This document shows positions 19,813-62,698 of a stretch of DNA of 64,000 nt, piece after piece (positions within the stretch are counted from its first letter, which is position 1; every line of letters begins with the position of its first letter). The position numbers and the translations under genes were made by a program. The notes beneath the pieces were generated by a model, which was not told the origin of the DNA, did no database searches, and saw nothing but the letters and a program-made list of their open reading frames with translations. Where the stretch lies: contig NW_015169194.1 of NCBI RefSeq assembly GCF_001447785.1, forward strand, positions 488,459-552,458. Direction: 5' to 3'. Origin of the DNA: Gekko japonicus. Taxonomy: Eukaryota.

Positions 19813-20356
19813 CTTTGACACTTTTTCTATTTACATCAGCCCCTTTTTCAAGCAAATACTGAGCAATTTCTTTGTGGCCTTTGTAACAAGATATCATAAG
19901 GCATGTATGCCCGTGACGATTTGATACTTCCAAGTCAGCTTTGTGCTCCACAAGGTACTTCACAATTTCCAGGTGGCCATCAAAGCAGGCAGCTCTAAGC
20001 GGTGTTGAGTTTGTCAGAGTGGTATTGTTGACAGATGCACCGTGATTTAACAAAGACTGGACCACCTTCAAATGACCGGCAGCCGATGCGGCCCATAATG
20101 GTGGTGCACCCTCAATAGTCTCACCATCGAAATTCACTGAGCCACCAATTTCTATAGAAGCACTACAATGTTCCAACAGATATTCCACCATGTCAAGATG
20201 TCCATAGCGGGCTGCCATTAGAAGGGGTGTGGCACCATTTGTTTTTTCTGACATCAGCAAGGCTACCTCTTCTTTTGCTTTATTTGCCAGCAACTTGGTG
20301 AGGAGCCGCAGCTTGCCATCACGAGCTGCATTGAATACTGCTGTCTTAAGATCCAT
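19813..20356 (-). CDS. FEM1C: Protein fem-1 homolog C, first coding exon
   Basis: MDLKTAVFNAARDGKLRLL... ankyrin repeats. Donor AAAG|GTGAGT at 19812 is phase 1 and matches the acceptor at 9078. The exon starts at 20524 (ttttcccctctag). Confidence 0.98.
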
Positions 20357-21149
20357 TTAGTCTCTGCCTCTCTTAATCTTTCTCTTCGGAATCACAAACG
20401 ATGGACTCAATGGAATCACAGAGCTGGAAACAGTCTCTGCACACACTTGATAGATCCGTGTTACCTCTGTGTACAGCATGAAGATTCAGCATTGACCTCT
20501 CAAAGAAGGTGCTATGTCGGCAATCTAGAGGGGAAAAGTTAAGAATTCTCTATTTTTGTTTTAGAACTGAAGACACACAAAACATCTATGCTTTTAGTTA
20601 TACTGTTTGCACCTTGCATTACATCAACTCTACGAAAAGGAACATAAATAATTAGATGCAAACATTTCCCCCCACGAAATGTTGGCTTTTAGGACCACAG
20701 AGTGAATTCAAGTTGCCTGCCAAGATCCAAGTGACTCCACAGTCACCCTTTGGACAAGCTCAAATTTCAGAGCTTACTTATCCAATAGTGTCAGATGGAG
20801 TCCATCCAAGATTCAGCTGTCTTAGACAACCTCGGTAGATAGTGAGTTGCCACCACCCGATAGCTATGAAAGTAATGAAATTTAATACAAAGACGGGTCT
20901 ATCTAAACCCGAAAACAAAAAAAGGAGCATGAAGCTTGCTGCCAGCAGACAAGGTGGCTGGAGGGCTCCCCTTCCCCCCCCCCTTCTCTGTGTATAAAGG
21001 GTTTTCGGCATGAATATTCTCCTCCTCTCTCCACCCACCCCCCCAAGTAGTTTAAGCAGGCTCACGATTTCCCCCACGTCTGCAAGACTATTACGGGCAC
21101 AGAGCCACTGAGAACGCCCTTTGCTTCTCCCCTGGGAAGGCTTCAATGA

Positions 21150-31276: not shown

Positions 31277-33492
31277 ACCACTTCCTGGTTCCAGTCGGGA
31301 CGGCGGCGGATGGCGGCAGGAACACTCCTGGCCGAGTCCACTGATATTCCTTGTCTCCCAGGGGCCAAGCAGTATAGTTTGCGCCTCAACAAACTCTCTT
31401 GGGGGAGAGCTTGTAGCAGGGAGCTTGCTTCAGGGAAGCAGAGGCGAGCGGCAGCTGGCACAAAAACCCGGAGTTGCTCCAACACGGGAGGTGATGGAAG
31501 AAGCTCAACAGTCTGTGCTGAGCATTAGTCGAGACCAACGAACCTCACGGAGTCTTCTAGATGAAATTAAGCCTGGAAGTACCATGAGCACACCATCAAG
31601 AAATAATTTATTTCAGTGTTTTATTTTGAGCCTCCCCTTTCGGATTACATGAAAAAACAAACTTGCCCTTTAAATCAATAGGGAGACCTAAATGTGAGGA
31701 TGAGTTTCTCTTCCTAATAAGCGGGGAAGAAAAGGAGTTCAGGCTACCCGATATTGAAATGCTAATTTTTCTCCCTTTAAGCTGACTACAGTATCCTTCT
31801 ACAGTTAAAAGTGGGACAGCGACTGGGGCGTGAGTAGAAATGCTGGCGAATCTGCGTGAGTCACAATACTTCATTGGACTGTACGGATGGTAGTGGAGGT
31901 GGAGTAGAGACAGTAGAAAGCATTAAGACAGAGGCAACAGAAAGAAGACAGAAAAAAAAGATAAGGAAGAAAGACAGAAGAAAAAAGCAGCAAGAAAGAA
32001 GAAAAGAAAAAAAGGGAGGAGTTTGGAAAATCTGTCTATCACCTACATATGTTATGGTATTAGGATATTAGGATACAATTTAGGTTTATAGTAAAGACAG
32101 GCGGTTAGATACTAGGATAGAATTTAGGTTAAATAGTAAGGATAGGTAATGGGAAAACACTTAGAGCTTAACTGGGATATTTAGAAAAAGCCAATAAATA
32201 TGGATAAGGCGGATGGAGGTAGAAGAGCATCTATCTCATCCTCTCCATTGAGTGCAGATCAGATAAGTATAAATGATTTACAGAATGTGATACGAGAATC
32301 TGTTATACTAGCAGTGAACTTGGATGTTGAAACAATTTTGTCTAAAGCATTAGAACCAATACATACAAAAATAGATGCTTTGGCAAATCATCTGTCTATG
32401 CAAACACAGGAAATTAAAAAATCAATCTCTGTAAATAAACAAGAGGCTTCAGCCTTAACAACTGTGACTAATAAGGTAGAAATCAGAATTGGAAAAATAG
32501 GACACCAACTATATGAAGATCTACCAGAAAATAAAAACAACTTACAAACAATAGACTTGTTACAAAGACAAGCTATAAATTTGACATGCGGGGACATGTG
32601 TGACAACACAACTAGAACCAAGACACAGAAATCATAAACAATCTGATCCTCATGGAAAGCCCACAGAGTTAGATAAAACATGTCCATACAATATTTTGCT
32701 AGACGTGGAAATGCAAAGTGAATGGCTTGAACCCCCTCTGATAGTCCAGGCCAAGATTCTGGGATTTAAAACAGAGGTAGACCANNNNNNNNNNNNNNNN
32801 NNNNNNNNNNNNNNNNNNNNNNNNNNNNNNNNNNNNNNNNNNNNNNNNNNNNNNNNNNNNNNNNNNNNNNNNNNNNNNNNNNNNNNNNNNNNNNNNNNNN
32901 NNNNNNNNNNNNNNNNNNNNNNNNNNNNNNNNNNNNNNNNNNNNNNNNNNNNNNNNNNNNNNNNNNNNNNNNNNNNNNNNNNNNNNNNNNNNNNNNNNNN
33001 NNNNNNNNNNNNNNNNNNNNNNNNNNNNNNNNNNNNNNNNNNNNNNNNNNNNNNNNNNNNNNNNNNNNNNNNNNNNNNNNNNNNNNNNNNNNNNNNNNNN
33101 NNNNNNNNNNNNNNNNNNNNNNNNNNNNNNNNNNNNNNNNNNNNNNNNNNNNNNNNNNNNNNNNNNNNNNNNNNNNNNNNNNNNNNNNNNNNNNNNNNNN
33201 NNNNNNNNNNNNNNNNNNNNNNNNNNNNNNNNNNNNNNNNNNNNNNNNNNNNNNNNNNNNNNNNNNNNNNNNNNNNNNNNNNNNNNNNNNNNNNNNNNNN
33301 NNNNNNNNNNNNNNNNNNNNNNNNNNNNNNNNNNNNNNNNNNNNNNNNNNNNNNNNNNNNNNNNNNNNNNNNNNNNNNNNNNNNNNNNNNNNNNNNNNNN
33401 NNNNNNNNNNNNNNNNNNNNNNNNNNNNNNNNNNNNNNNNNNNNNNNNNNNNNNNNNNNNNNNNNNNNNNNNNNNNNNNNTTATTAAAAAAA
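31277..33492 (+). mobile_element. L1-like LINE (5' UTR, coiled-coil ORF1 start, gap, A tail) inserted into an L2 fragment
   Basis: 10-bp TSD aacaatggag at 31267-31276 and 33493-33502. CpG-rich 5' end (acttcctgg...gatggcggc), coiled-coil-like ORF at 32200-32637 and an A tail. The L2 frame LLDASLTME|AQV resumes after it. Confidence 0.7.
32785..33480. other. Assembly gap, 696 N
   Basis: Run of N. Confidence 1.
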
Positions 33493-37923: not shown

Positions 37924-38595
37924 TCACCATTCCAGCAACTCTTGTACATCTTCCTTCTTTTTATTTTTCCATACAGCTTGCTGTTGCCTATAGCTAGACT
38001 CCTGAAAAATTTTCTTTACTTGTACAGCAAACCCAGGACTATCTTCTTGTAGAGCATTAAGGGCCCCAAGAACAAGAGGAGTCCTCTCCAGTGGAAGCGA
38101 GGTATTCCGTGGCCTGAGAGGAATGACTGTGTTGCTCTTGTGTGGCTTGGTAAGTGAACTGAACAGACAAGCGTAAGCCTGGAATTCACAGCAATGCTCA
38201 CTAAGGAAGTTTTCTGTCAACAAGATAATTGTCCATGCAGAGCCATTCATGGCATCTTGTAAATTTTCCAACAGGTGCCTACCACTAGGCATTTCAGCAA
38301 AGATTATTCCTGGTTTAATACAGAATTCATTTTGCAGCAGCTCCTGGACTCTAACAGCTTCATCTATATCATCCTCAGCATGAAGAATCACAAACCTGTA
38401 AAATATGCCCCCAGTGTCCTCATCACTGCTGTAAGTTTCTGGTGTGTCTGTATGGCTATTGGTGTCTGTGTCCAATGATAAATCACCCAGTGCAGAATTT
38501 TGATTGAAGACTTTCTGTTCTACACTTCTATAGTGGTCCTTCACACTGTTCCTTGGAGAAAATGGAAACTTTATTTTGGAGTTACTGCTTCCCAT
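37924..38595 (-). CDS. TICAM2: TIR domain-containing adapter molecule 2 (TRAM)
   Basis: MGSSNSK myristoylation motif and a TIR domain (FVILHAEDDIDEAVRVQ..KPGIIFAEMP..NGSAWTIILLTENFL). Single coding exon with an acceptor at 38621, syntenic between TMED7 and FEM1C. Confidence 0.95.
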   Translation of the reverse strand: MGSSNSKIKFPFSPRNSVKDHYRSVEQKVFNQNSALGDLSLDTDTNSHTDTPETYSSDEDTGGIFYRFVILHAEDDIDEAVRVQELLQNEFCIKPGIIFAEMPSGRHLLENLQDAMNGSAWTIILLTENFLSEHCCEFQAYACLFSSLTKPHKSNTVIPLRPRNTSLPLERTPLVLGALNALQEDSPGFAVQVKKIFQESSYRQQQAVWKNKKKEDVQELLEW

Positions 38596-39208
38596 TGTCT
38601 AAAGGCAGTGCTTCTTCCAGTCTATAAACAAATTGAAAGAAGTATCATATCTCATAAAATTTCCAAAATACACTGGTAGCTATACTGATGTCATGTGAGT
38701 GAAAAACAGAAGGCTGGAAAGTAAATCACAGCTAACCATGTGATCCTACATAAAGGAAAGGAGAAAAAAGAGAACTTTTACTTCTTATTCACATAAACAG
38801 AACAGACATTTTCTGCAGAAGAGTAGTATATGCCCATAATACTGTGAACCATAAAAGCATGTGCATTCAGACAAAAAGTTTCGTTTTGTGAGCTTGAATT
38901 CTTATTATGCAGACATTATTTATGCAGTAGGCCACGCACATTTCATTGCATAGCTATAATGAACTCATAAACAAACTAGAATATTTAGAAACTGTGAATT
39001 GAAAATGAAGGCTTAAAATGTGACAATTCACATCTGGGGTATAATTTGACCATGCAGAGATTTATCATCAGGACTGGATCTAAAGATTGCATGTGAGTTG
39101 AATCCAAAGTAACTTGAGCAGAGCTCACAGAACAAGCCCTTCTCACCTCCTATTTTCACTGAGCCCTCTGCAGTCCACATAGACAATAAGTTTCAGCCCA
39201 CCCTAACC

Positions 39209-39690
39209 TAGAAATGTAAAGATGGAGGGGGGGGAGAGAGAAATTTACATGCTCACAAATACTTCTCCCCCCAAGACACAGATTTTTTTTCCCAATGAGA
39301 AAAAAATCTAGCTTTTATTTCAGCTTTTTCAGTGTGTGGGGGAATTAGGAAATTTGGGGGAGCACTGGAAAAAATCCCCCCCTTTTGGAATAAGTAAAAT
39401 GTGCTAAGATTGCATTGAGCACAGCAGTTTGCTTTAATGTTGGGTTATTTGATATTTAGTTAGTAGAAAAACTGATACATTCTATAAATATTCCAATTAA
39501 TACAATTATATATACTAAGTTATAAACAATGCAGTTTATATCATTAAAGAAGCAAAACGGGTTTATGTTTGATAATAAAGTATTGTATTGCATATTTCAG
39601 GGTTTTTTAGTTTAGAACCCCCCCCCCCCCCCGGAAGACAAACAGTTATTTTTCTATGGCTCTAAAATTTCTGGAAATTTTACATCTCTA
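39209..39690. mobile_element. Old non-autonomous hAT copy related to 55107-55741
   Basis: Ends tagaaatgtaaa / ggaaattttacatctcta. No TSD is retained. Confidence 0.55.
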
Positions 39691-40777
39691 CTCAGATCTC
39701 TTTAAGTAGACAAGTGTAGTTTTAGGACAGATCGATTCCATGATTTTAGCCAGCATTCTAGACCTCCCTGGATAACTGTGGGCTGAGTCTATGCAGGAAT
39801 TATACTGGACTAATGAAACAGAGGGCTCAATGGAGGGGGGGAAACTTTGGAGTGGCTTGGCTTTCTGCACACATGAGACCTAAGACCTCCAGATTTCCAG
39901 TCTATGTCGGCCTTTATGAACTTCAAGCCTTGGGCCCCACTGCAGAGGATACAGCAGCAGGGCCAGGCTTGAAATTAAGTACAGACTACCCAATCTGCAC
40001 ATCTTACACTACTCGTTGTTGTACTGCAACATCCAGCCAGAGTAGAAAGCTGCCACTGAATGTACCCAGTTCCTGTGAGACCTACACTGAAATTACCAAA
40101 GCAGCAGAATCAAGACAGACATAACGGAACATGGGAAGCCTTAATCCCTTCCCCAGAACTAGCATTATAGTCCTTCAATCTACTTTGAACTCAGTAGCTA
40201 ACATTTTATAGCAGCTGACATGCAAAGGTGATCTCCACTATTACTTTTAGGTAAAGATTTATGCCGGACTCCCGTCTCTGTCATCCAGGCAAGAACAAAG
40301 AGACACACTCACATATTATCGCAGATAAAAATAGGGAAAGAACACCTGGGACTCTAACCTCAGCTGATCCCGAGGGCCTTCTATCTAATTAGCCTCTTGG
40401 CACAGAGTTGCTAAACAAACTAACTAATAGATATTGTAGAAGCTACTATTCTTACACACTCCAGATGGCAAATGCTCTCAATAACCAATCCATGTATAAA
40501 ACAGAGAAAACAGGGAGGCAGAACCCAGCACTGCAAAATGAGCTATATGAATTTCATACAGCTTATCCCCTTTTTTGACAGAGTTACTATCTTCAAGACA
40601 AAAAGAAATTGAACTTGTCAGTATAATTCCATTTCTGCATAAAAATGCAGCTATGAATCTAATTATTTTTTAAGTGTTGCAATGTGCATTTTGCATGCTC
40701 ATGGGATTGCCACACAAAAGCAGATTATGGGCCCTATTACAGGATTTTGTGCTTCAAGATGCTCAGGTTTAAAATTG

Positions 40778-40988
40778 GGGAGGGGCCATGGCTCAGTAGC
40801 ACAGTATCTGTTTTGCATGTAGACGGTCCCAGCTTCAGTCCCCAGCATCTCCAGTTAAAGGATCAGGTATCAGGTGATGTGAAAAACCTCCAGCTCAGAC
40901 CCTGGAGAATCCCTGCCAATTTGAACAGACAATACTGACGGTGATGGACCAATAGTCTGATTCAGTATAAGACAGCTCCATGTGTTCA
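40778..40988 (+). mobile_element. Squam3-like tRNA-derived SINE
   Basis: Head with A/B-like boxes (tggctcagtag; cttcagtccc) and a CR1-like tail gatggacc...ctgattcagtataagacagc. Confidence 0.65.
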
Positions 40989-41859
40989 AAATACCCCAAA
41001 ACAGAGTTTCTAGCTCTCATCACTACAGAAAAAAGTGTTAATCATGTGGACAATAGATGGTGAATATTCAGAAACCAGAAAGCACATAGGGCTTCCTATG
41101 GTCAGAGTTTGTGTCAGCATACCTGCCTTCTTTACAGGCACTGAATCTCCATGCTGGGAAAAGCAGCTTCTGTTGAATTTCTACCTGTTGCAAAGCTACT
41201 AAACTCAGGAACCAATTTTAGAGCCATTAAAGAGATATATGGGTTGGTAACAAAAGAGATGCTTAGGCTCATGCAGAAGACTTACAGACTGTGGCTGTGG
41301 ACTTTTAAAATGTTTTTCTTCAAGCACCTAATATCCATGCCACTTCACAAACCTTCTGGAACACCACTCACTTTCAAAAACACTTTGCCATGTAGAATGG
41401 GTTAAAGTTCTACATGACCTTAAATATCGCTGCCTCTAGTTCTGGCAACTGCCCATTCATACAGCAGAAAGCGATAGATCCCTTTCCATTTCTTCGAGTT
41501 TTCCATCATGCAATCACAGACAACTTTGGATGGAAGAGGTCACCTACTTTATGTTGGGCACTATAAACAGGACCGGTATTGCTTCTTCCTTCTCCCCCCT
41601 TGTCATCTAAGACAACTTAAGGAAGGATACATGGTAACCACAAATCACACCTGACTACTAAGCCAATCTAAAATGTTTAGATGTTCTGGCTAAAATTTAA
41701 AAAATCAAATATAAATTCCCCTTGGGCGTATCTTAATAGCTTTCATATTTTTCTGGATCTTGAATACAAACTTCGGTTAGGTCAAAGAAAATAAAACAGA
41801 GAGTGCTACAAGGGGAAAATTATATGTGACAAGTAATTAAAGATCAAAACTTTGATCCA

Positions 41860-43050
41860 CAATGACTTTACGAATCCTCAGTGTCTCTTCTTGCTCCCCA
41901 CCACCACTTCCCTGTGCCTTACTCTCCACTCAAAACTTCACCAATAGTTTGAACCTCTGCTCTCTCTGCTTCCCCACCTTTTCCATTGTCTTCCCATTCT
42001 CCCATCTCACTCAACGTGTTGACTTCTATCATCCTCATTTAATCCTCCCACCCCCTCAAATCCTGATCATCTTCTTTATTACCCTTCCCTACCTCATTCA
42101 AACTTGCCACTGCTCCAATTCTCTAAAAAAGAACCCCTCTTCCAAAAAGGCCCACTGCACACCCCTAACTACCAGCTGATTTCCCTTCTACTTTACTCTC
42201 TAAAGCCTGGGGACATGGCCACTTACTCCCACACTCTCTCTACTATCTCCTTCCTCAGATTCCTCTCCTGTCCCTCTACAGCCTGACTTTCATCCTTTGC
42301 CAATGATTTTCATGAGTGCTCTCCATGGAAACTGCCACCTCCTCATTGGCAAACCTCTCTGCTGCCTTTGATACATCCATCACTCTTTACTGCTTGACTC
42401 CATTCACACCCTAGGCTTCCAGGACCCTGTCCTTTGCTAGTTTTCATCTTACCCTCCAATCGGTCACCCAGTGTTTCCACAGAGGGAGGCTTCCCTGCTG
42501 CTTTCTCCCCCTCTGCTGTGGCCGTGCAAGGATTTGTCTTTGGTCATGTTATACTTACACTCTGTCCCTGGATGACCCTCATCAGTCCTCATAGCTTTCA
42601 AGTACCAGCTGTGCTCTGGTGACACTCAGTTCCACATGTCTCCCTCACAAGCTAGTCCCTCCATCTAGTCCTGGATCTACAACTGCAAGTCCAGTAATTC
42701 ATTGTCACTTCAAGAATCAATTTCTCATCTTTCTTCCCAAGCCACCACCTCCTTCTTTAGTCTCACTGTCCATTGAACAACCTCACTGTCTACCCTGTTG
42801 ATCAGGTGCATCCTCTTGGTTTGATTCCTTCCTTTACTTTGCTTGCTGTATCAGCTTATTGCCAAGTTGCCCCCTAGGTGAAAACTCTGGTACACAGGCC
42901 AGTCATCTCCCCCCCCTCCCCTTCTCTAGTGCCCTTTCCCTTTTCTCAGATCCCCGAACTGCTTATCTGTCTGCTCACAGGTTTAGCACAAACTTATTGC
43001 CCTTACTTGCAAAGCCCTGCATGGCCTGGCTCCCTATGTCTGTGCCCTGC
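41860..43050 (+). mobile_element. Ancient L2 remnant
   Basis: Pyrimidine-rich, with ctctctgctgcctttgataca (LSAAFDT, an RT motif) at about 42355. Confidence 0.55.
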
Positions 43051-43199
43051 GACCATCTGAAAGTTTCCAGCACCCTTAAGTGACTCCACCCTTTCTCCCT
43101 TGCAGCCACCTTCCTGTACATTAGAAGCAAATCTTGTGCTGCCTCCCAATTACAGCCAGGCGAGTCCAGGCTTCCCGCAGAAAGACAGCCCTGGCCTGC

Positions 43200-44130
43200 A
43201 CTGGGGAATCGCCACACTGAAAATACGCGCGCCTGCATCTTTGGTACAAAAGCGATGCCTCCACGAAGAGCATCCTGAGCTAGGCTACGGCGAGAAAAGG
43301 GAGCAATCCTGGACCAGACCTGGTAACGCTCCAAGACGTTGAGCGGAAGAAGGTTTCGCCCGCTGCTGCTGCCGCCGCTTGAGGCCGCTCTGGTTGAAGA
43401 AAATCGGGAGGGGAGGGGGGGGGGACGCAGCGCCTGAAGGGGTCTAGCACCGCCTTGTGCAGAAGGGGCTGCTCGGGACGGAGACCTCTAGCTTCGCGCC
43501 AGGCAAGGGGAAGGCATGTGGTGGAGGGCCTGGGCCGCAACTTCTGGGCTGGGTCAAGTCGCGAGCGAGCGACCCCGGAGGCGCACCCAGCCCGCCCGCC
43601 CGCCCCGCCCTAAGAAGTGGTGCTTACCAGGACGGCCCCGGCCCGGGAGAAGATTCACGTTGCCCGCAGAGAAGCTTCGCTACTGTCCCGCCGAGAAAGG
43701 GAAGCCGAAGCGCGGGTGGGGCGGAATCAAGAGCTCTTGGTGGGGGCGGCTGTGAGACTCCGCTCCAGCGGCGGGGGAGGGAGAGGCAGGAAGCTTGGCC
43801 GACAAAAGGGGCATTCCGGCTTGGCTTGGCTTCCTCTTTCCTCCGCTGAAGGCTGGAGCGAGGTTTTACTTGAAGCTGTGCAGCTTTGCTTCCGTCCCAT
43901 CAGAAACTTCGTCGTCATCCGTCGCGGTGCAAGAAGAGAGAGAAGGACGTCTCCCAATGAACGGGGGAGGAGGAAGGGAGGGCCCCTAACTGGGTTGGGA
44001 GGAGAAAATGCGAAGAAGGGTCGTACATGATGATTTTTACAGTGTATTTTATAGCGGGCGAGAGAGTAGTTCCAAAACTCGTTGAAGCAAGAAAAGAGGC
44101 CGCAGATGCGTAGATTTTAATTTCGCTAGG
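43200..44130 (-). promoter_or_regulatory. TICAM2: TICAM2 CpG-island promoter and probable non-coding exon 1
   Basis: CpG-rich, with GC boxes and GGAAG motifs. Strong minus-strand donor CTG|GTAAGC (exon end 43628) lies upstream of the 38621 acceptor. Confidence 0.7.
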
Positions 44131-44574
44131 TCTGGGACACGCTCTTCAAAAAGTCATTTTTGTCACTCGTTTGCCTTTTGAGTCCCGTCCCTCCCTTTTC
44201 CAAGTGTGTTTTGCTCCCTCTGGGACTACTAAAGAGAGCAAAACACATTGGGGGAAAGAACCCTGAAGCAATAGGGACAAACGAGTGACCAAAATGACAG
44301 TGCGGAAGAGCCCTATGGGCAGACAGACAGACACGCAACAAGACCTTGCCCATTATGTTTGGTTTCCCTTGCCTCTGCATAGCAGCCATTCCCCAAGCAT
44401 TCGGACATAAACCAGAGCAGGTTTTAAGTCTGAAATAATTCTACGAATAGAATAAGCAGATACATGATGACATTGTAGCTTTCATGACTAAACCACCAGC
44501 AGAAATCAAGAGTAATTGTGTTTAAACAAAGTAGATGCCAGATTAACCGAGGCTGTCCAATTTTAACAAACACA

Positions 44575-44862
44575 GTTTCTAGCTAGATTAAAATACATTT
44601 CAATTAATGTATGTATTCAAATAAACTGGCTACAGTACATAATTACCAGAGAGAGCTGTTGATGGAATACTCCAGGCATGTTCATTCTATTAATTTTGCT
44701 TCACTTTTCTCTGAACCATTCGTTTCTAGCTAGATGAAAATACATTTCTATTAATGTATGTATTCAAATAAACTGGTATATAATTACCAGAGAGAGCTGT
44801 TGATGGAGTACTCCAGGCATGTTCATTCTATTAATTTTGCTTCACTTTTCTCTGAATCATTC
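44575..44862. repeat. Tandem duplication, 147 bp + 141 bp
   Basis: 44575-44721 is nearly identical to 44722-44862. Confidence 0.95.
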
Positions 44863-45009
44863 TTTTAAGGAAAAAACCACATATTACAAATCAAAATTTA
44901 CATACACATCAATCTGATTTGAATATGGGAGTTTTCCCTATCTGACCCATACCAGTTCTGTCTTCACTCTGGTCTTGTGTGGATTCAGCTTCAGGTGTTT
45001 TCTTTAAGG

Positions 45010-45380
45010 CCATAAGAAAGAGCCCTGCTGAATCAGACCGATAGTCCATCTAGTCCAGCATCTTGTTTCACACAATGGGCAACCAGTTCCTCTGGATGGC
45101 CAATAACAGGGCATAGAGTCTGAGGCCTTCCCCTGATATTGCCTCCTGGCTTTGGGATTTAGAGGATTAGTGCTTCTGAATGTGGAGATTTCCCTGTCAC
45201 CATGGCTAGTAGCCATTGATAGACTTATCTTCCGTGGATCTATCTAATCCCCCTTTAAAGCTGTTTATTCCTGTGGCCATCACTACATCCTCTCTGGCAG
45301 CAAATTCCACATTTTAATTACTCTGTATAAAATAGTATTGCCTTTTGTCCATTCTGAATCTACTGCCCATCAGCTTCTTT
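45010..45380 (-). mobile_element. CR1 3' end
   Basis: cataagaaagagccctgctgaatcagacc...tagtccagcatc, homologous to 2575-3120. Confidence 0.65.
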
Positions 45381-46986
45381 CTGCCACTTGATCACAGCTG
45401 TCAGACACTGGCTAGGAGGGAGACAGCTGCTTCTGAAGGCTTAAATAATGTATACTCAGTGTCATCAATGTATCTGACACCAAACTACAAAAAACAACTG
45501 AGACTACATATGGGGCTTTAACCAATTTCCCAGTTCAGCAGCAAACCTCTCCAACTCCCCCCCCACACACACACACACTGTTCTTGAGGTTCCATTGTCC
45601 CTTGGGACAGCAGGGGAAACTGAGAAACTTATGCTGTGCTGATGGAAATCCTTTCTATCAGTGGCGATTTCTGGTGGATCCAAGGCTTTGCCTCCTCCCT
45701 TGGTATTTCTTACATCACTATGCAGGCCTTCCCCACTAGATCTTAGGGAAAGGATTTCAGACCACCACACCTGAGGGTCTCCAGAGTTAAGATAAATTTG
45801 TTGCTTGTCTAGAGCTGAAAACAAAGGCAGCTGCCATGGTACTTACAGAGCTTTGTTACAGTGGTTGGACTATTAAGAGACATAAAAACTTTAATAAAAA
45901 AACAGTATAGTAGTGATGAAGCAAACCAATGGGCCACAGAGACACCATTTTCTGATACAAGTAACCCCATATGGAAGTTCACATACTAGAGAAGAGGGTG
46001 ATATTAATTCCTGGTTGTTAGTTTTCCACATCTTATAATTTGTGGTTTCTTTGAAAATGGTAGGTATAACTCTGGTTGCTATGGTTTACCATAATACCCT
46101 GAATTCTCCAGGATCAGTCATTTCCACACTTTCTGCAGATTTTTTAAATGGTTGTGCATGCCTTGTGGAATACTTTTCCAGAATACATGAGGACAGGTGC
46201 ATAGCCACGATGGGGCATTTAAGGGCCATGTCCTCTCACTAGTTAGTCCTGCCCCACCAGCAGCAGTAACTCCAGCACCTCGCAGGCCCTGCTGCCCACC
46301 TTCCGTGCCACACTGGGAATAGCCACCCACAGGGCCAGGCATACCACCCAAAGGTCAGCTGGTGGGCCAGAAGCAGGGAGGGAGGAGAGGTGTATCCCAG
46401 CAGGCTGGCCACACAAACTCCCACGAGGCTGAAGGCACACTGTCCAAAGCCACAAGTGGAGGTGAGAGGTCAAGGCAGCCTGCCATTGCTCCCCTGCCCC
46501 ACCACCCAGAAATTCCTGGGTACACCCCTGTGTGAGGAAGGCTTCTACTCTGGCACAGTTCTGGAAGTTGGGCAAGGATGAACGTTTTGAGAAGCCGCCC
46601 CCCTCCATCCAGTAGCTTCCATCAGTGGCAACTGTCCACACGTTAAAAATATTGAAACAATTTTTAATGGCACTTGCTGTTTTAATTCCTTTTCCTATTA
46701 ATGCCTAAGTACTGTATTTGCTTTTTTGTGTGTGTAGCATGACATTTTCAGTGATCCCTTCACCGACATGCCCGATAAATTGTTCTCAGCTGTCACAAGA
46801 TACTGTAAAGTGTTTATGAAGTCATATGATTAGTCAGAAAGTAACACATGGAATTTCCACTAAAGCAAATATCTACTGCATATATTATTTCCCCCTTTAA
46901 TCTCTCTTCCTCTTTCTTTATAGTCTCATCTTCTTCAACTGTAAGCCTGAAAGACAAGTTCATTTTGTTTTTTAAAATTCCGTTAA

Positions 46987-47367
46987 CAGGCGGAGGGAAG
47001 AGAGGGGATGCTTGCTAGCAGGAAGAAGACTCGGAGGACAAGGAGGCCATGTGGCTGCCCCTCCCTCCCCTCTCTTCCCCCACCAGCTGAGTAGAGAGAT
47101 TTAAATTTTAAACCGCCTCTCTGGAGTTGTGCCACAGCTACAGCACGATTTTTTCATTGTATCCAGTGGAGAAATTGTGCTGCCACTACAGCATGACTCC
47201 AGAGAGGGGGTTTAAAGTTTGAACTGCCCATTTGCCCATCCTCCTTTAAAACTCCTCCCTGCTCAGCTGGCTAGCAGGGGAAGGGGGGGTGGCTGTGTGG
47301 CCTCTGTTGCCGGCCACGAAGACTCTGCTGGCAAGAGGCTGCACCTCCCCTCTCTTCATCCTGCCTG
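46987..47367. repeat. Degenerate inverted repeat of about 380 bp (MITE-like)
   Basis: Nested complementary arms around about 47161, for example ctctctggagt/actccagagag, cagctgag/ctcagctg, gaagagagggg/cccctctcttc. Confidence 0.7.
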
Positions 47368-48593
47368 CCAGCTTCTTAAGGCACTGCAGACTTCACTTTG
47401 GGTGGAAGGAGGGAAATCTTGTGGGGCTGCCCCCTTAAGGGAGGGGGTGGAGCCCGCAATAGCCCCACCGTAGCTCCAGGACAGATAACAGTATTTTAAG
47501 GTGCCTTCTGTTTATAACTGAACACGAGTGCTTCTTGATCAATTATGAAACAACATGCACACCTAACAGATGTCGTAAAATATGAGATAATGCAATAATA
47601 CTAAAAGCCATTTCTGAAGATAGGTTTTCTTTTCATTTTGCTTTAATTGCTTAAATGCTCAAATTACAGTATCCAGGTACAGGTATAGTTTTGAATACTT
47701 AATATAGACCGGTATTAAAAGTGTTGCTTAGGTTTATACCATGTGGCTTATGCTAACTTAGCATAAATTTGCCTTTTCTTCTTAGAATGCCTATTTGATT
47801 CTCCAAATGCCCTGTTGCACCCTCCAGCTTCAAAACTGTCTTGCAGCACAGAGATGCTGCAGTTAAAGGCAACCTAGTCTTGGAGATTGTTTTCCCCCTT
47901 ACAAACCAGGATTAAATTGAGGTTTAGAATCTAGGGAATAATATGTTTTGTCCAGACAACTGCATTTGAATGTCATGTCAAATTAAAACAGGATTCTAGG
48001 CTACCCGGCCATCAAAACTTAAATTTCTTTCTATCCACAATGGGGGAAAGCAGGGTTGAATAAGGCAATATGGCCACAAGCTGTGTTTGTGCCCATCAGA
48101 AAATGCTTTTTCATGGCACTGTTTGTAGCAGTATTTTAAACAACGGGGGATGATAGATATATTAGAGGGTTGAAGTATTTTTTATATTAAAGCACTTTCA
48201 ATTGCAGCCATTTTAGCCCCTTGTTTGTTTGTTTTCTTGCTCTAAAACTAATGGCGGTTACTCAGAACCTCAAAAATTATAGGGAACATTTTTGAAGCAC
48301 ATTGTTTGACTTGACATTGAATTGACATATATAGATCCCATTTGCACTGAATATCCTTTAAGTGACACTTAGTTTAAGAATCCAAAGACAATCCTAGTAA
48401 CTATATCAACAATTAAGAGTTAGACTGCAATCTTATACCTATTTCCTTTAAAGTAATCCTACTAAGTAGGGGCCACTGCTGAGTAAACATAAAACCAGGC
48501 TGTTAGTTTTCAGATTCCCTCATATTAGAATCATTCTAACTCGAGCTTTAGAATGGTCCCGATATAAACCAACCCCCTTGATTTGAGAAATAT

Positions 48594-48919
48594 TTGTTGT
48601 TCAGTCGCACAGTCGAGTCCGACTCTTCGCGACCCCATGGACCAGATCACGCCAGCACCTCCTCTTCCGCCGTCCTCTGAAGTTGGCTCAATTTCATGTT
48701 CGTTGCATCTATAACACTATCTAACCATCTCATCCTTTGCCGTCCCCGTCTTCTTTGACCTTCAGTCTTTCCCAGTATCAGGGTCTTCTCCAGTGAGTGC
48801 TCCCTTCTCATTTGGTGGCCAAAGTATTTGAGCTTCAGTTTCATTATCTGGCCTTCCAGGGAACAGTCAAGGTTGATTTCTTTTAGGATTGACTGATTTG
48901 ATCTTGCAGTCCAAGGGAA
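48594..48919 (-). mobile_element. 5'-truncated BovB (RTE) LINE
   Basis: KLKLKYFGHQMRREHSLEKTLILGKTEGQRRRGRQRMRWLD and a (caa)n tail. 9-bp TSD gagaaatat at 48585-48593 and 48920-48928. Confidence 0.92.
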
Positions 48920-48984
48920 GAGAAATATATGTGCTGTATTAAGTCCTCAAAGAAAGATCCACTCCAGCAGAACTTTATATTAAT

Positions 48985-48990
48985 TTTATT
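48985..48990 (-). terminator. Candidate distal TMED7 polyadenylation signal
   Basis: AATAAA about 3 kb past the stop codon, at the end of a largely repeat-poor AT-rich stretch. Usage is inferred. Confidence 0.4.
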
Positions 48991-50583
48991 ATCCCATATA
49001 ACGTTCACAGGGCCAATTTAGTGTCAGTAAGAAAAAGGCTTGCAAATTATATCAGTACTTAGACATTTCACATCATGAAACACATGTAGACTTAAAACAT
49101 CTTTTGTTGTGGTTATTACTTCAACCTCAGATGTGCACCACAGGTTTTGTTTGTACAACTGTTCAGTTTTTACAGCATTTTAAAACCCACTTTTATATCA
49201 ATTCTCCTGTGTGCCTGTTAACTCCTACTACCTAATCAGGTGATTTGGAATTTGTGTGAAGCATGAAATACATTTTTTTTTAATGTGCCGTCCAGAAAGA
49301 TAGGAGATAGGTGGAACACAACTAGTTTAAGAGCTAGTGTCACAAACCCACTACAGCAGAACCACCAAGTTAGGCAGACCCATATACATTAACATTACTA
49401 GCAGGGGAAATTATGAAGCAGAACTCACACACAGTTCAACATATAGTAAAGGATTAATTCAGATAACTAGCAGCCATACAGCAACCACTTAGAACATGTA
49501 ATTGCATGAGGGAGTCATATGTAGATGCTAACCATGTGGCTTTATCTATAGTCTTTAACAATATGGCTGGTCACAACTGTACTGTTTGGAAATCCGTGGA
49601 ACCTGAAGATTTGATAAGCTTTGCCACTTGGTTAGAGACCAGAGAAAACTACCTCTCATGTTTTTACAGGCACAAGTGGTATAGTTTTAACTGGCTACTG
49701 CATGGCCCTTGGTTGTCTGAATCTACCTAATATCAGAACATAATTAGTCATGAACTTATCAACTGGGATGTTATTTAAGTCCCTCAACTGGCCTACTTAC
49801 AAGTAGCTTTCAGCTTTAATCTGAACAGGTATGCTTTCACAAGACCTTTGCTCTTTATAGCCAAATCCCCTAACCATTATTGGTAACATACCAACCCTTT
49901 GTTTATGTAAGGCTCCTAAATATTTCTCAATAGTAGAAATGGAGCGGCAAGTTAGTCTCCAGCAATAATGAGTTTATTTTATAGTCTTGTCATAATTACC
50001 CTGCAGGTACAGTCAAGTTTATTTTATACAAGCTGAAGCGCTACAGTAAAAAATGAAATAAAATCACACACTGAGTTACTTGTATGGGGCTTTAATCATT
50101 TACAGGTCTTCCCTGGCCCTAAAATACACACTTTTATAGGGTTTTTTTAAAGCCTCTCTCTCTCACACGCACACAGAGTAATTAAGGGGACACTTTAACA
50201 TACTCAATAACTAAATAAACTAAGAATCCTCAGATTCATCATCGAAGCTGAACTGCTCAATATGAAGGTGAATCTAACTCTCCCCTCCTTACAACCACCA
50301 GCATTTAAATTTGACACAATGATCCAGGTTCATACATGGGTGTGTGTAACACATTTTTCTGGGACTGATAGCATACCTACACAATTGTAGGGACTACCTA
50401 CAATTGCAAAAACAGAGTGAGGCAACTTTGTTGGAAAATTCAATGCGAAGTGTGTTTCTGTGATTGTTAGCTTCAGTGGTCTTCATGTTTACCAACACTG
50501 CAAGTCAAGTTTCTATTTTTTCCTTGATACAAGCTGCCTTCTTTATTTCAAAATATACAAATAAACTCTCTTGAAGTCTGTGA

Positions 50584-50812
50584 GGGCCAAACTACATGTT
50601 TGTGTTTTTAAAGACTTGAGTAACGGGGCTGGGTTCCCCACAGCAGCTGCATGTGACAACTTTTAAAAAATAAATGAAAGCCTGTTTGGTCTTGAAGCAC
50701 CAACACGTGTACAGGAAGAGCTACTGCCTTCCTCTGAATGGCTTTCCTGCACTGCTTGGCTGCAGGGAACCAGGACCCAACTCTTCAAAAACACGAACAA
50801 CTAGTTTGGCCC
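50584..50812. mobile_element. PIF/Harbinger MITE
   Basis: TIR gggccaaacta / tagtttggccc with a 3-bp TSD TGA. Confidence 0.75.
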
Positions 50813-52006
50813 TGAGACTTACTTTCAAATAGATGTGTTTATCATGTTACTTTGATTGCTTTTGACTACAGTACAATATGCGATCTCACATACCTATGAA
50901 ACCTTTGAGTATATGCTAGTCATGAGCAAAGAGAGTGATTGATCCAAGCTAAGAAAATCCAAATACCAAGAAGATTGTAAACTACTGCACAAGGAGGCTC
51001 TCCAGCTCAAAAGTGGTGGCTGCTGGCACCAAGCAACAAATTAGTGCATCACACCCATGAAAACTAGGTTTCCAGCAGTTAATTTAAAGACTCCAAAAGG
51101 AGATATATTGAACTCACAGATTTTATACAGCCATGCTGGGTGGTTGTACAGATGTTGCTTAATAAGCCATTTTTAAAGGTTATAATCCTCAAACCACTTA
51201 TTCAAACCTGGTCCCAGAGAACATGGGACTACCTACATATTATACTGAAAGCGACCTTCTGCTCGGAGGCACAAATCATTTATCCCAGTCCACTTGCACT
51301 TTAGCTCAGTCCTACTGATGTCAAGTGGGAATGGCTGACTCAGATTATTTGTGGATCTGCCTGTAGATTTCAATTCTTCAAAGCAGCAGCATCACAATTT
51401 GAACAATTCTGAGAGTTACAAGACATTCTCCCAATTTATTTAAAAGAAAAATGAAAATCAATTAGATAAACATTTTCCAAGTACAGAGAACTGGATTCCC
51501 CACGGTCCTCAGTTTTAAATTTGGTTCAGTAAAACAAGAAATTACAAGAAAATGTGACTGGCATTTTCATAGAAAAATCAAAACAGTGCAGTACATGGCT
51601 TTGAGACTACAATTAATCACATTGTTTTTTGTTTTAGTCCCATAACTTTTTTCTTGAGAAATCAGACTGCCATCCACTTTTCATATGGATGATCTCCCAA
51701 ATCAACATTTTAAAGGATATTTTAAAGCATTATACTCCCATGTAGTCTCATTTGTTTAAAAAAATGTAGCAACCTTAAGTTAAATCTCTGTGCAGACATA
51801 AACAGGACAAAATCCATATATTACAAATAAAAAGCTGCCTTTTTCCACAGCTTTTGGGGAACGTGTATTTTGCAACTTTAAGCAGAGAGGGAAGGCTAAA
51901 CATATTTAAAATGTTCTCCATATTTAATTGTTCTGTAACTAGAAATTATTTGAAGAACAGTATTTTACAAAGGAACAGTGGATTTGAAATATTTTCTCAA
52001 CATGAG

Positions 52007-52243
52007 TTACGATCCAACACGGGTTGTGGTGGTTCTTTTGTCTGAGAAGAAGCTTTTGAGAAGAAAAACCTGCCCAATGCTAACTACAAGAAGAATGATA
52101 GCTTCTCCTACTGACCAATAAGCCACCCGTGTGTTTAAATCTTCCGCTCTGCTGCGGCCTTGGGCTTCTCTTAATCGAAAATGAGTTTGGTGATCAATGA
52201 CAGACTTTAAAGCTTCATGAATTGCAACACATGCAGATTCCAT
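52007..52243 (-). CDS. TMED7: Transmembrane p24 trafficking protein 7, exon 3
   Basis: [13 protein letters not shown]...[39 protein letters not shown]. Acceptor ctttatccag. Confidence 0.98.
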
Positions 52244-53797: not shown

Positions 53798-54043
53798 CTG
53801 AGTAAGTGCAGTGACTCTGTTTTCACTAGGAAACAGAGGTGGATCATCTCCAACCTGGAAGTCGAAGTACACAGTTTTGTGTGTGAAGGTAGAAAACTCG
53901 TTGCTGAAACAAAATTTATATGTTCCATTTCTGGATGCAGTAAAAGTAAAACTATCATACTGTTTCTTCATCTCCTTGTATAACACAATGCCATCTGGAT
54001 CTTCTAAGCGACAGTCAACATCATAGTGTCCTCCAGTGATCAC
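53798..54043 (-). CDS. TMED7: TMED7 exon 2 (GOLD domain)
   Basis: [11 protein letters not shown]...[22 protein letters not shown]. 246 nt with cag| and |gtagag boundaries. Confidence 0.98.
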
Positions 54044-60207: not shown

Positions 60208-60620
60208 GGCCCTGTTCATACGAGCCCATTTGGGCCGGGAGCGGGACAGAACGGGGGCGGAGCAAACGGGCACGATCCCACCTCAACATCTGGGGAGCGT
60301 GCCGTCTCCGTCCCTGATCCATCCCAAATGCCGATACCGCGCCGTACAAAAGAACCACCTATCTAGGTGGTTGCATCCATTGGAGCACCTCGAGCTGGGC
60401 TGTGGGATCGGCGGCGCGTCCTTGCGCCGCCGCATCCCGGCCCCCGGCCATACTGCGCATGCTCGAGCATGCGCAGTTCGGCAGCCTCCCCCTCCCATCG
60501 GACTTTTCCTCCCCGGCATCTGATCGTGCCGGGGAGCGATGCGTGGGATCCCGCCACGGCGTCTCAAGTTTGGAGCGGCTCTGAGTAGCCGCGTTTCAGC
60601 CGTCCCGTGTGGCAGGGGCC
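60208..60620. mobile_element. CpG-rich Harbinger-like MITE with a central palindrome
   Basis: Imperfect TIR ggccctgttcatacg / cgtgtggcaggggcc. Perfect 26-bp palindrome at 60452-60477. Confidence 0.6.
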
Positions 60621-62518: not shown

Positions 62519-62698
62519 CTGGAACTCCAGGGTGCACTTGACGCCCTGCATAATCTCCTCGTAGAAGCACTGCTTGGCATTGTCTGGCAACTCAAACGTG
62601 ATCTCCGAGGCTCGCACGGCACGACCCAGGTTTAGCAACAGCAGCAGCCCCCACAGTCTCGCCAAGGCACCAGGGCCCAACCTGCCGCTCAGCATCAT
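62519..62698 (-). CDS. TMED7: TMED7 exon 1 (signal peptide and GOLD start)
   Basis: Hydrophobic leader followed by [28 protein letters not shown]. Donor CAG|GTAAGA. Confidence 0.96.

Follow-up and report, generated by a model that had tools for sequence, protein, structure and literature searches.

A possible TAG-type GOLD-TIR reading frame at the TMED7-TICAM2 locus of Gekko japonicus, with splice sites that are probably weak cryptic signals

Introduction

Here we describe the TMED7-TICAM2 locus in a stretch of DNA of Gekko japonicus, 64 kb long and called the window below, whose minus strand carries TMED7, TICAM2 (encoding TRAM) and FEM1C, in this order. In humans, read-through from TMED7 into TICAM2 gives rise to TAG, a fusion of GOLD and TIR domains, and a first-pass annotation of the window had drawn attention to a pair of internal splice sites by which the two gecko genes could be joined in the same manner. 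The sites are present and the joined frame is open, while the transcript reads, the behavior of the sites across species and the arrangement of competing acceptors suggest that the sites are probably weak cryptic signals within protein-constrained codons.

Genes at the locus

TMED7 is the immediate upstream neighbor of TICAM2 and shares its strand, with TMED7 exons within 62698-52007 and the TICAM2 coding sequence at 38595-37924. The parts of the two genes are listed below; a slash marks the exon boundary, donor scores come from an approximate matrix based on published compilations, and acceptors are rated by the count of pyrimidines at positions -20 to -4.

62519..62698, minus strand: TMED7 exon 1, coding part, with the ATG at 62698, the signal peptide and the start of the GOLD domain; 60 codons; donor CAG/GTAAGA (score 10.99); Pfam PF01105, E 8e-5
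53798..54043, minus strand: TMED7 exon 2, GOLD core; 82 codons; acceptor ttccacAG/GTG; donor CAG/GTAGAG (5.03 bits); Pfam PF01105, E 8e-20
52007..52243, minus strand: TMED7 exon 3, coding part, with a coiled-coil region, the transmembrane (TM) helix of 19 residues and the stop; Pfam PF01105 (EMP24_GP25L/GOLD), E 2e-17
43628..43800 (5' end approximate), minus strand: TICAM2 non-coding exon 1, final exon base 43628; donor CTG/GTAAGC (score 9.33)
38745, minus strand: upstream alternative acceptor of the TICAM2 coding exon, ctttatgtAG/G; 15/17 pyrimidines
38621, minus strand: canonical acceptor of the TICAM2 coding exon, tttgtttatAG/ACTGG; 13/17 pyrimidines
37924..38595, minus strand: TICAM2 (TRAM) coding sequence, 223 residues in one coding exon, with a myristoylation-type start, MGSSNSK

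The TMED7 of the window has the makeup of a p24 gamma protein, with a signal peptide, a GOLD/EMP24 domain across exons 1-3 and a C-terminal TM helix, and its TM segment and 10-residue tail are identical to those of annotated TMED7. A CpG island (60301-60600; G+C 0.65, observed/expected 1.02) is found within TMED7 intron 1. The TICAM2 product possesses the N-terminal MGxxxS motif of TRAM, a TIR_2 domain at residues 68-168 (Pfam PF13676, 29.1 bits; cut-off 28) and orthology to annotated TICAM2, its closest relatives being the proteins of other geckos, Heteronotia binoei (90% identity), Euleptes europaea and Paroedura picta (84-85%). Its exon 1 lies inside another CpG island, at 43201-43800.

Candidate splice sites and the joined reading frame

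The two candidate sites of a fusion are internal to coding exons of the two genes:

52110..52118, minus strand: candidate internal TMED7 donor TTG/GTCAGT, exon end 52116, in the Trp codon that precedes the TM helix
38551..38575, minus strand: candidate internal TICAM2 acceptor, with the tract aaataaagtttccattttctcc and AAG, followed by the exon start at 38551

On the donor side the minus strand reads GTG GCT TAT TG/G TCA GTA, with t at 52117, g at 52116 and 52115 and t at 52114. On the acceptor side it reads aaagtttccattttctccaAG/Gaacagtgtgaag, with the AG at 38553-38552, or, taken further, aaagtttccattttctccAAG/G AAC AGT GTG AAG. The exon start at 38551 is the third base of the TICAM2 Arg15 codon (AGG), downstream of the myristoylation site. 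The phases of the two sites match, TG and G forming a Trp codon that is followed by NSVKDH; exon 3 contributes 42 open codons and the stretch past 38551 another 208 before the normal stop is reached, amounting by arithmetic to 60+82+42+1+208 = 393 codons. By exon-by-exon Pfam assignment, the candidate product would carry PF01105, contributed by the three TMED7 pieces, and PF13676, contributed by TICAM2, and it would possess neither the TM helix nor the myristoylation site. A TAG-type GOLD-TIR frame of 393 codons is thus structurally possible in the gecko.

In these respects the first-pass annotation was accurate. The exon end at 52116 within TAT TG/GTCAGT, the acceptor at 38551 (a 13/17 tract followed by AAG/G) and an in-frame RVAYW-NSVKDH joining of about 393 residues with GOLD and TIR, free of TM helix and myristoylation site, were all borne out by the letters, phases, open frames and Pfam matches, and the human junction, given there as VAYW-HSV, is indeed found in the human TAG protein (sequence P0123). 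The flagged sites are real, and they are more than a random GT/AG pair. By consensus both are weak, however, with C at donor position +3 and A at acceptor position -3, the latter position being better occupied in both 38745 and 38621.

These two upstream acceptors would also have different consequences for the reading frame. Joining donor 52116 to 38621 creates a TGA stop at the junction itself (TG plus A), and joining it to 38745 adds, after the Trp, 17 residues and then a stop, so that a TMED7 devoid of its TM helix would be predicted from either. In transcripts, continuation past 52116 with GAACAGTG would be indicative of the TAG type, and with ACTGGAAG or GATCACAT of the stop type.

Transcript evidence in Gekko japonicus

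Raw reads from three Gekko japonicus RNA-seq runs, along with one Logan contig set, were aligned to positions 38200-44199, a stretch of 6 kb that takes in the acceptor side together with the TICAM2 CpG island, the two candidate sites being 13.5 kb apart. Usable depth over TICAM2 was found only in run X21 (about 58 over 38400-38599), and on the exon 1 side the depth was confined to 43600-43799, with joints leaving from 43628 or 43627. Two junctions were recovered in this run, both with GT..AG ends on the minus strand, one from 43628 to 38621 (4 reads) and the other from 43627 to 38744 (6 reads; the cut is displaced by +1, and the exon starts at 38745). Transcription of TICAM2 therefore begins at an exon 1 of its own, in the CpG island, which is spliced to two acceptors located upstream of the start codon. 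For 38551, neither a joint nor a loose end was listed in X21, all 10 junction reads having entered 38621 or 38745 from TICAM2 exon 1. Likewise, on the acceptor side, no loose end pointing out of the aligned stretch was listed in X21 at 38621 or 38745. The gecko RNA result is negative, but underpowered.

Some further observations can be made from the same alignments. Acceptor 38745 was used at least as often as 38621 (6 versus 4 reads), adding 124 nucleotides of 5' untranslated region. Only about 1% of aligned X21 reads extend by at least 20 letters unlike the window sequence at that place, and three reads that connect TICAM2 exon 1 with FEM1C exon 2 explain this fraction: they lead from donor 43628 to 20495-20524, where the FEM1C exon 2 acceptor is located (exon 2 begins at 20524, and the FEM1C ATG is at 20356), and leave out the TICAM2 coding exon. 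Such joints amount to approximately one third of the canonical TICAM2 junction count, and they represent either TICAM2-FEM1C read-through or a first exon common to both genes. Between FEM1C and TICAM2, positions 32785-33480 are 696 N, a gap or a mask. In another run, X20, many reads with 95-99% likeness pile up at 39664-39695 and 40825-40859, each pile having loose ends at its two edges (69 and 65 reads). They resemble transcripts from a dispersed repeat family with members in the TICAM2 intron, rather than local expression.

Conservation of the two sites

Conservation across species was judged from proteins. On the donor side, the Trp-Ser of TMED7 is conserved from sharks to mammals, the ray-finned fishes among the hits included, and a passage in PMC9440496 describes ray-finned fishes as being without TICAM2. 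With a Ser codon of the TCN type, the donor GT is fixed by these two residues. The G at +5 and the T at +6, for their part, derive from the subsequent Val codon (GTA), and Val is replaced by Ile in Eublepharis (leopard gecko), Phrynocephalus, Pantherophis, birds and fish, so that a good donor context is not conserved among squamates.

On the acceptor side, the junction residue is well conserved in squamates. Among 18 squamate TICAM2 proteins, Arg15 is present in 16, two snakes having Lys, and the neighboring positions are similarly maintained (Asn16 in 17/18, Ser17 in 15/18, Lys19 in 17/18, Asp20 in 15/18). Lys is also found at the junction column of one agamid-like Logan protein (P0021). The Arg codon is AGG in both squamates in which it can be read, directly in the gecko window and, in Pogona, through the Trp at the junction. 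In nearly all of about 65 placental sequences the junction codon specifies Ser or Arg, which fits a codon of the AGN type. In the same protein comparison, no equivalent Arg or Ser was found in turtles, crocodilians, paleognath birds, a marsupial or monotremes. Overall, conservation of the TAG sites is patchy.

These data bear on what had been proposed for the window at the outset, namely that the TICAM2 N-terminus is otherwise divergent, that retention of the acceptor is consequently the informative part, and that the fusion may date to the amniote ancestor. The first statement is wrong for squamates, in which residues 1-20 have a mean conservation of 0.71 versus 0.55 for residues 21-62. The second loses its force with it: a conserved R-N-S-x-K-D motif extends across both sides of the junction, and protein constraint can therefore keep the acceptor AG. 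The pattern would look like that of a constrained peptide rather than of a constrained splice site. As to the third, an origin in the amniote ancestor is not demonstrated, given the Lys in snakes and an agamid and the lack of an equivalent residue in the other lineages just named.

Two TICAM2 models, one gecko-like from Logan (P0008) and one from Phrynosoma (P0020), begin at Met18 (MKDHY and MKDNY, respectively), without the MG start. Met18 lies just past the position of the internal acceptor, and such starts could be artefacts of gene calling or could reflect a transcript spliced at the internal acceptor. Two Logan proteins (P0097, P0106) show a primate-like N-terminus. TICAM2 was also found in paleognath birds, that is in ostrich, kiwi, emu, tinamous and rhea (P0032, P0034, P0035, P0038, P0122, P0131), so the suggestion that birds lack this gene fails for birds as a whole.

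Interpretation

We estimate at roughly 60% the probability of a reading in which the two sites, at the positions of the human TAG junction, are weak cryptic signals within codons constrained at the protein level (Trp-Ser-Val in TMED7, the conserved Pro-Arg-Asn-Ser at the N-terminus of TRAM), and in which the gecko has no such fusion or makes it only occasionally, as a by-product of read-through. For a fusion to form, transcription from the TMED7 promoter would need to pass the TMED7 poly(A) site and then to traverse 13.5 kb, the TICAM2 promoter included, and the weak donor at 52116 would have to pair with 38551 instead of with 38745 and 38621, two proven acceptors that would be met earlier. 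A read-through transcript meeting these stronger acceptors first would acquire a stop at or near the junction and would encode a TMED7 without the TM helix. The fusion junction is inferred to be used little or not at all, and retention of the sites themselves can be explained by protein constraint.

A number of points weigh against this reading. Donor 52116, with 4.95 bits, ranks at the top of the 13 GTs in exon 3, level with the genuine donor of exon 2 (5.03), and acceptor 38551, with 13/17 pyrimidines, ranks at the top of the 22 AGs in the part of the exon preceding the TIR domain, level with the genuine acceptor 38621. The fusion model of Pogona has the same junction as the gecko frame, and it is found in two annotation releases. 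Human TAG is itself a minor isoform, and a rare junction is thus easily missed. The X21 result covers about 12% of that run, from a tissue of unstated origin, and 8 weaker loose ends stand outside its listing, with which up to about 5 reads of short overhang at 38551 would be compatible.

The best surviving alternative, which we consider unlikely, is that of a genuine, conserved TAG orthologue, with 52116 spliced over 13.5 kb to 38551 after read-through past the TMED7 poly(A) site, and with the GOLD-TIR product predicted to dampen TRAM-TRIF signalling in lizards, an effect that may be limited to some cells or require stimulation. The identity of the junction position with those of human TAG and of the Pogona RefSeq isoform speaks for it, as does the pairing, in frame, of the best cryptic sites of both exons; so do the AGG codon shared by gecko and Pogona, and the near universality of AGN-type Ser/Arg in the placental sequences, along with fusion models in five placental orders. 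However, no read across the fusion junction was listed in the gecko RNA covered, the Lys of snakes and of one agamid and the want of an equivalent in turtles, crocodilians, birds, a marsupial and monotremes interrupt the pattern, positions +5 and +6 of the donor are not conserved in squamates (Ile for Val), and a fusion model is present in only one of about 20 annotated squamates. A further difficulty is topological: with the TMED7 signal peptide and no TM helix, the TIR domain would by default end up in the lumen of the endoplasmic reticulum, a puzzle that would apply to human TAG as well.

A wider claim, that lizards express a GOLD-TIR isoform at the TAG junction, either as an amniote-ancestral trait (lost in snakes, turtles, archosaurs and non-placental mammals) or through repeated recruitment from the same latent sites, seems to us distinctly unlikely. 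That read-through ends at 38745 or 38621 and yields a truncated, soluble GOLD protein, with the in-frame pairing to 38551 being incidental, we hold to be quite improbable, even though these are proven acceptors (15/17 and 13/17 pyrimidines) with a better -3 base than that of 38551, and with the consequences for the frame described above (TG plus ACT giving TGA at 38621, and 17 residues and a stop at 38745), since no outward loose end was listed for either acceptor in X21 on the acceptor side.

The literature on the distribution of TAG is not uniform. TAG expression is given as exclusive to humans in one passage of PMC7904555, TAG is assigned to 'Human & other primates' in an entry of PMC9755862, and a section of PMC9440496 (2022) includes one squamate among the species with TAG-like proteins. 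The evolutionary inference is therefore not new, and the gain is modest: the gecko contributes sequence potential, the point having been raised already by a RefSeq lizard model and by the 2022 paper. Should lizards prove to make a TAG with this junction, the origin of this negative regulator of TLR4-TRAM-TRIF signalling would lie much further back than has been supposed, and non-primate models could serve for its study.

Comparison with known fusion proteins

Known fusions were sought among all 2,542 word-sharing candidate proteins of 215-684 residues, each of which was scored, and, for the TICAM2 query, among proteins of 123 residues or more. Within this set, the geckos represented in RefSeq (Heteronotia, Paroedura, Sphaerodactylus, Eublepharis, Euleptes) have no fusion model. 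The proteins that do combine GOLD and TIR domains fall into several groups.

One group is formed by models in which the TM helix is retained:

Alligator sinensis, 433 residues
Rhea, 465 residues
Tinamus, 490 residues
Vulpes, 648 residues
Neofelis, 526 residues
Erinaceus, 539 residues

All of these (P0121, P0122, P0126, P0127, P0129, P0131) possess the whole C-terminus of TMED7 followed by the full MG start of TRAM, and they look like run-on gene models, not proteins of TAG type, and lend no support to the TAG junction. PMC9440496, in its treatment of these proteins, leaves models that retain the TM helix and models with the TAG junction unseparated, and the former architecture appears to be counted there as TAG.

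Another group is the ruminant TICAM2 isoform X2 (402 residues), found in Cervus, Bos, Bubalus, Odocoileus, Dama, Muntiacus and Rangifer, a GOLD-TIR protein free of the TM helix. Its junction reads AYWS/SVD, against GKSQ/SVD in the TRAM of the same animals (P0125 and P0218-P0227 versus P0216 and P0110), which implies, on comparison of the proteins, a donor one codon and one base further on, after the Ser, and an acceptor after the Gln codon. Unlike in human and gecko, the pair of sites would thus be a shifted one. In further models the junction falls at the human and gecko position: those of the aardvark and two pikas read RVAYC/HSVD and those of the hyena and the panda RVAYC/PGV, and the Cys at the junction points to a Ser codon of the AGY type.

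A third example, and the closest to the gecko frame, is the protein of Pogona vitticeps (XP_020635703.1; TICAM2 isoform X3, A0ABM5FT16), 391 residues in length, which reads RVAYW/NSVRDNC and carries both PF01105 and PF13676. RefSeq thus already contains a TAG-type model for a squamate, as a computational prediction, and the same species also has a canonical TICAM2 isoform X1 of 224 residues. In Phrynocephalus, an agamid relative of Pogona, Ile follows the Trp-Ser of TMED7, and the donor context is probably weaker than in the gecko. Non-mammalian 'TAG' proteins in the databases are thus, as judged from their sequences, of two kinds, with the TAG junction present only in the Pogona model, and the separation of these two kinds is a by-product of the present analysis.

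The reference for all of these remains human TAG (TMED7-TICAM2 read-through isoform 1, 404 residues), in which the junction reads RVAYW/HSVD, followed by TSP, compared to RVAYW/NSVK in the gecko. In both, the junction falls in the Trp codon that precedes the TM helix and in the codon that precedes the xSV of TRAM, the acceptor column of the gecko corresponding to R20 in human and to R15 in Pogona, and both frames combine GOLD and TIR in the absence of the TM helix and of the myristoylation site. The two differ in standing: the gecko frame is known from the DNA, its junction being absent from the RNA reads examined, while human TAG is backed by cDNA and functional evidence (Palsson-McDermott, 2009, as cited in passages of PMC9755862 and PMC7904555).

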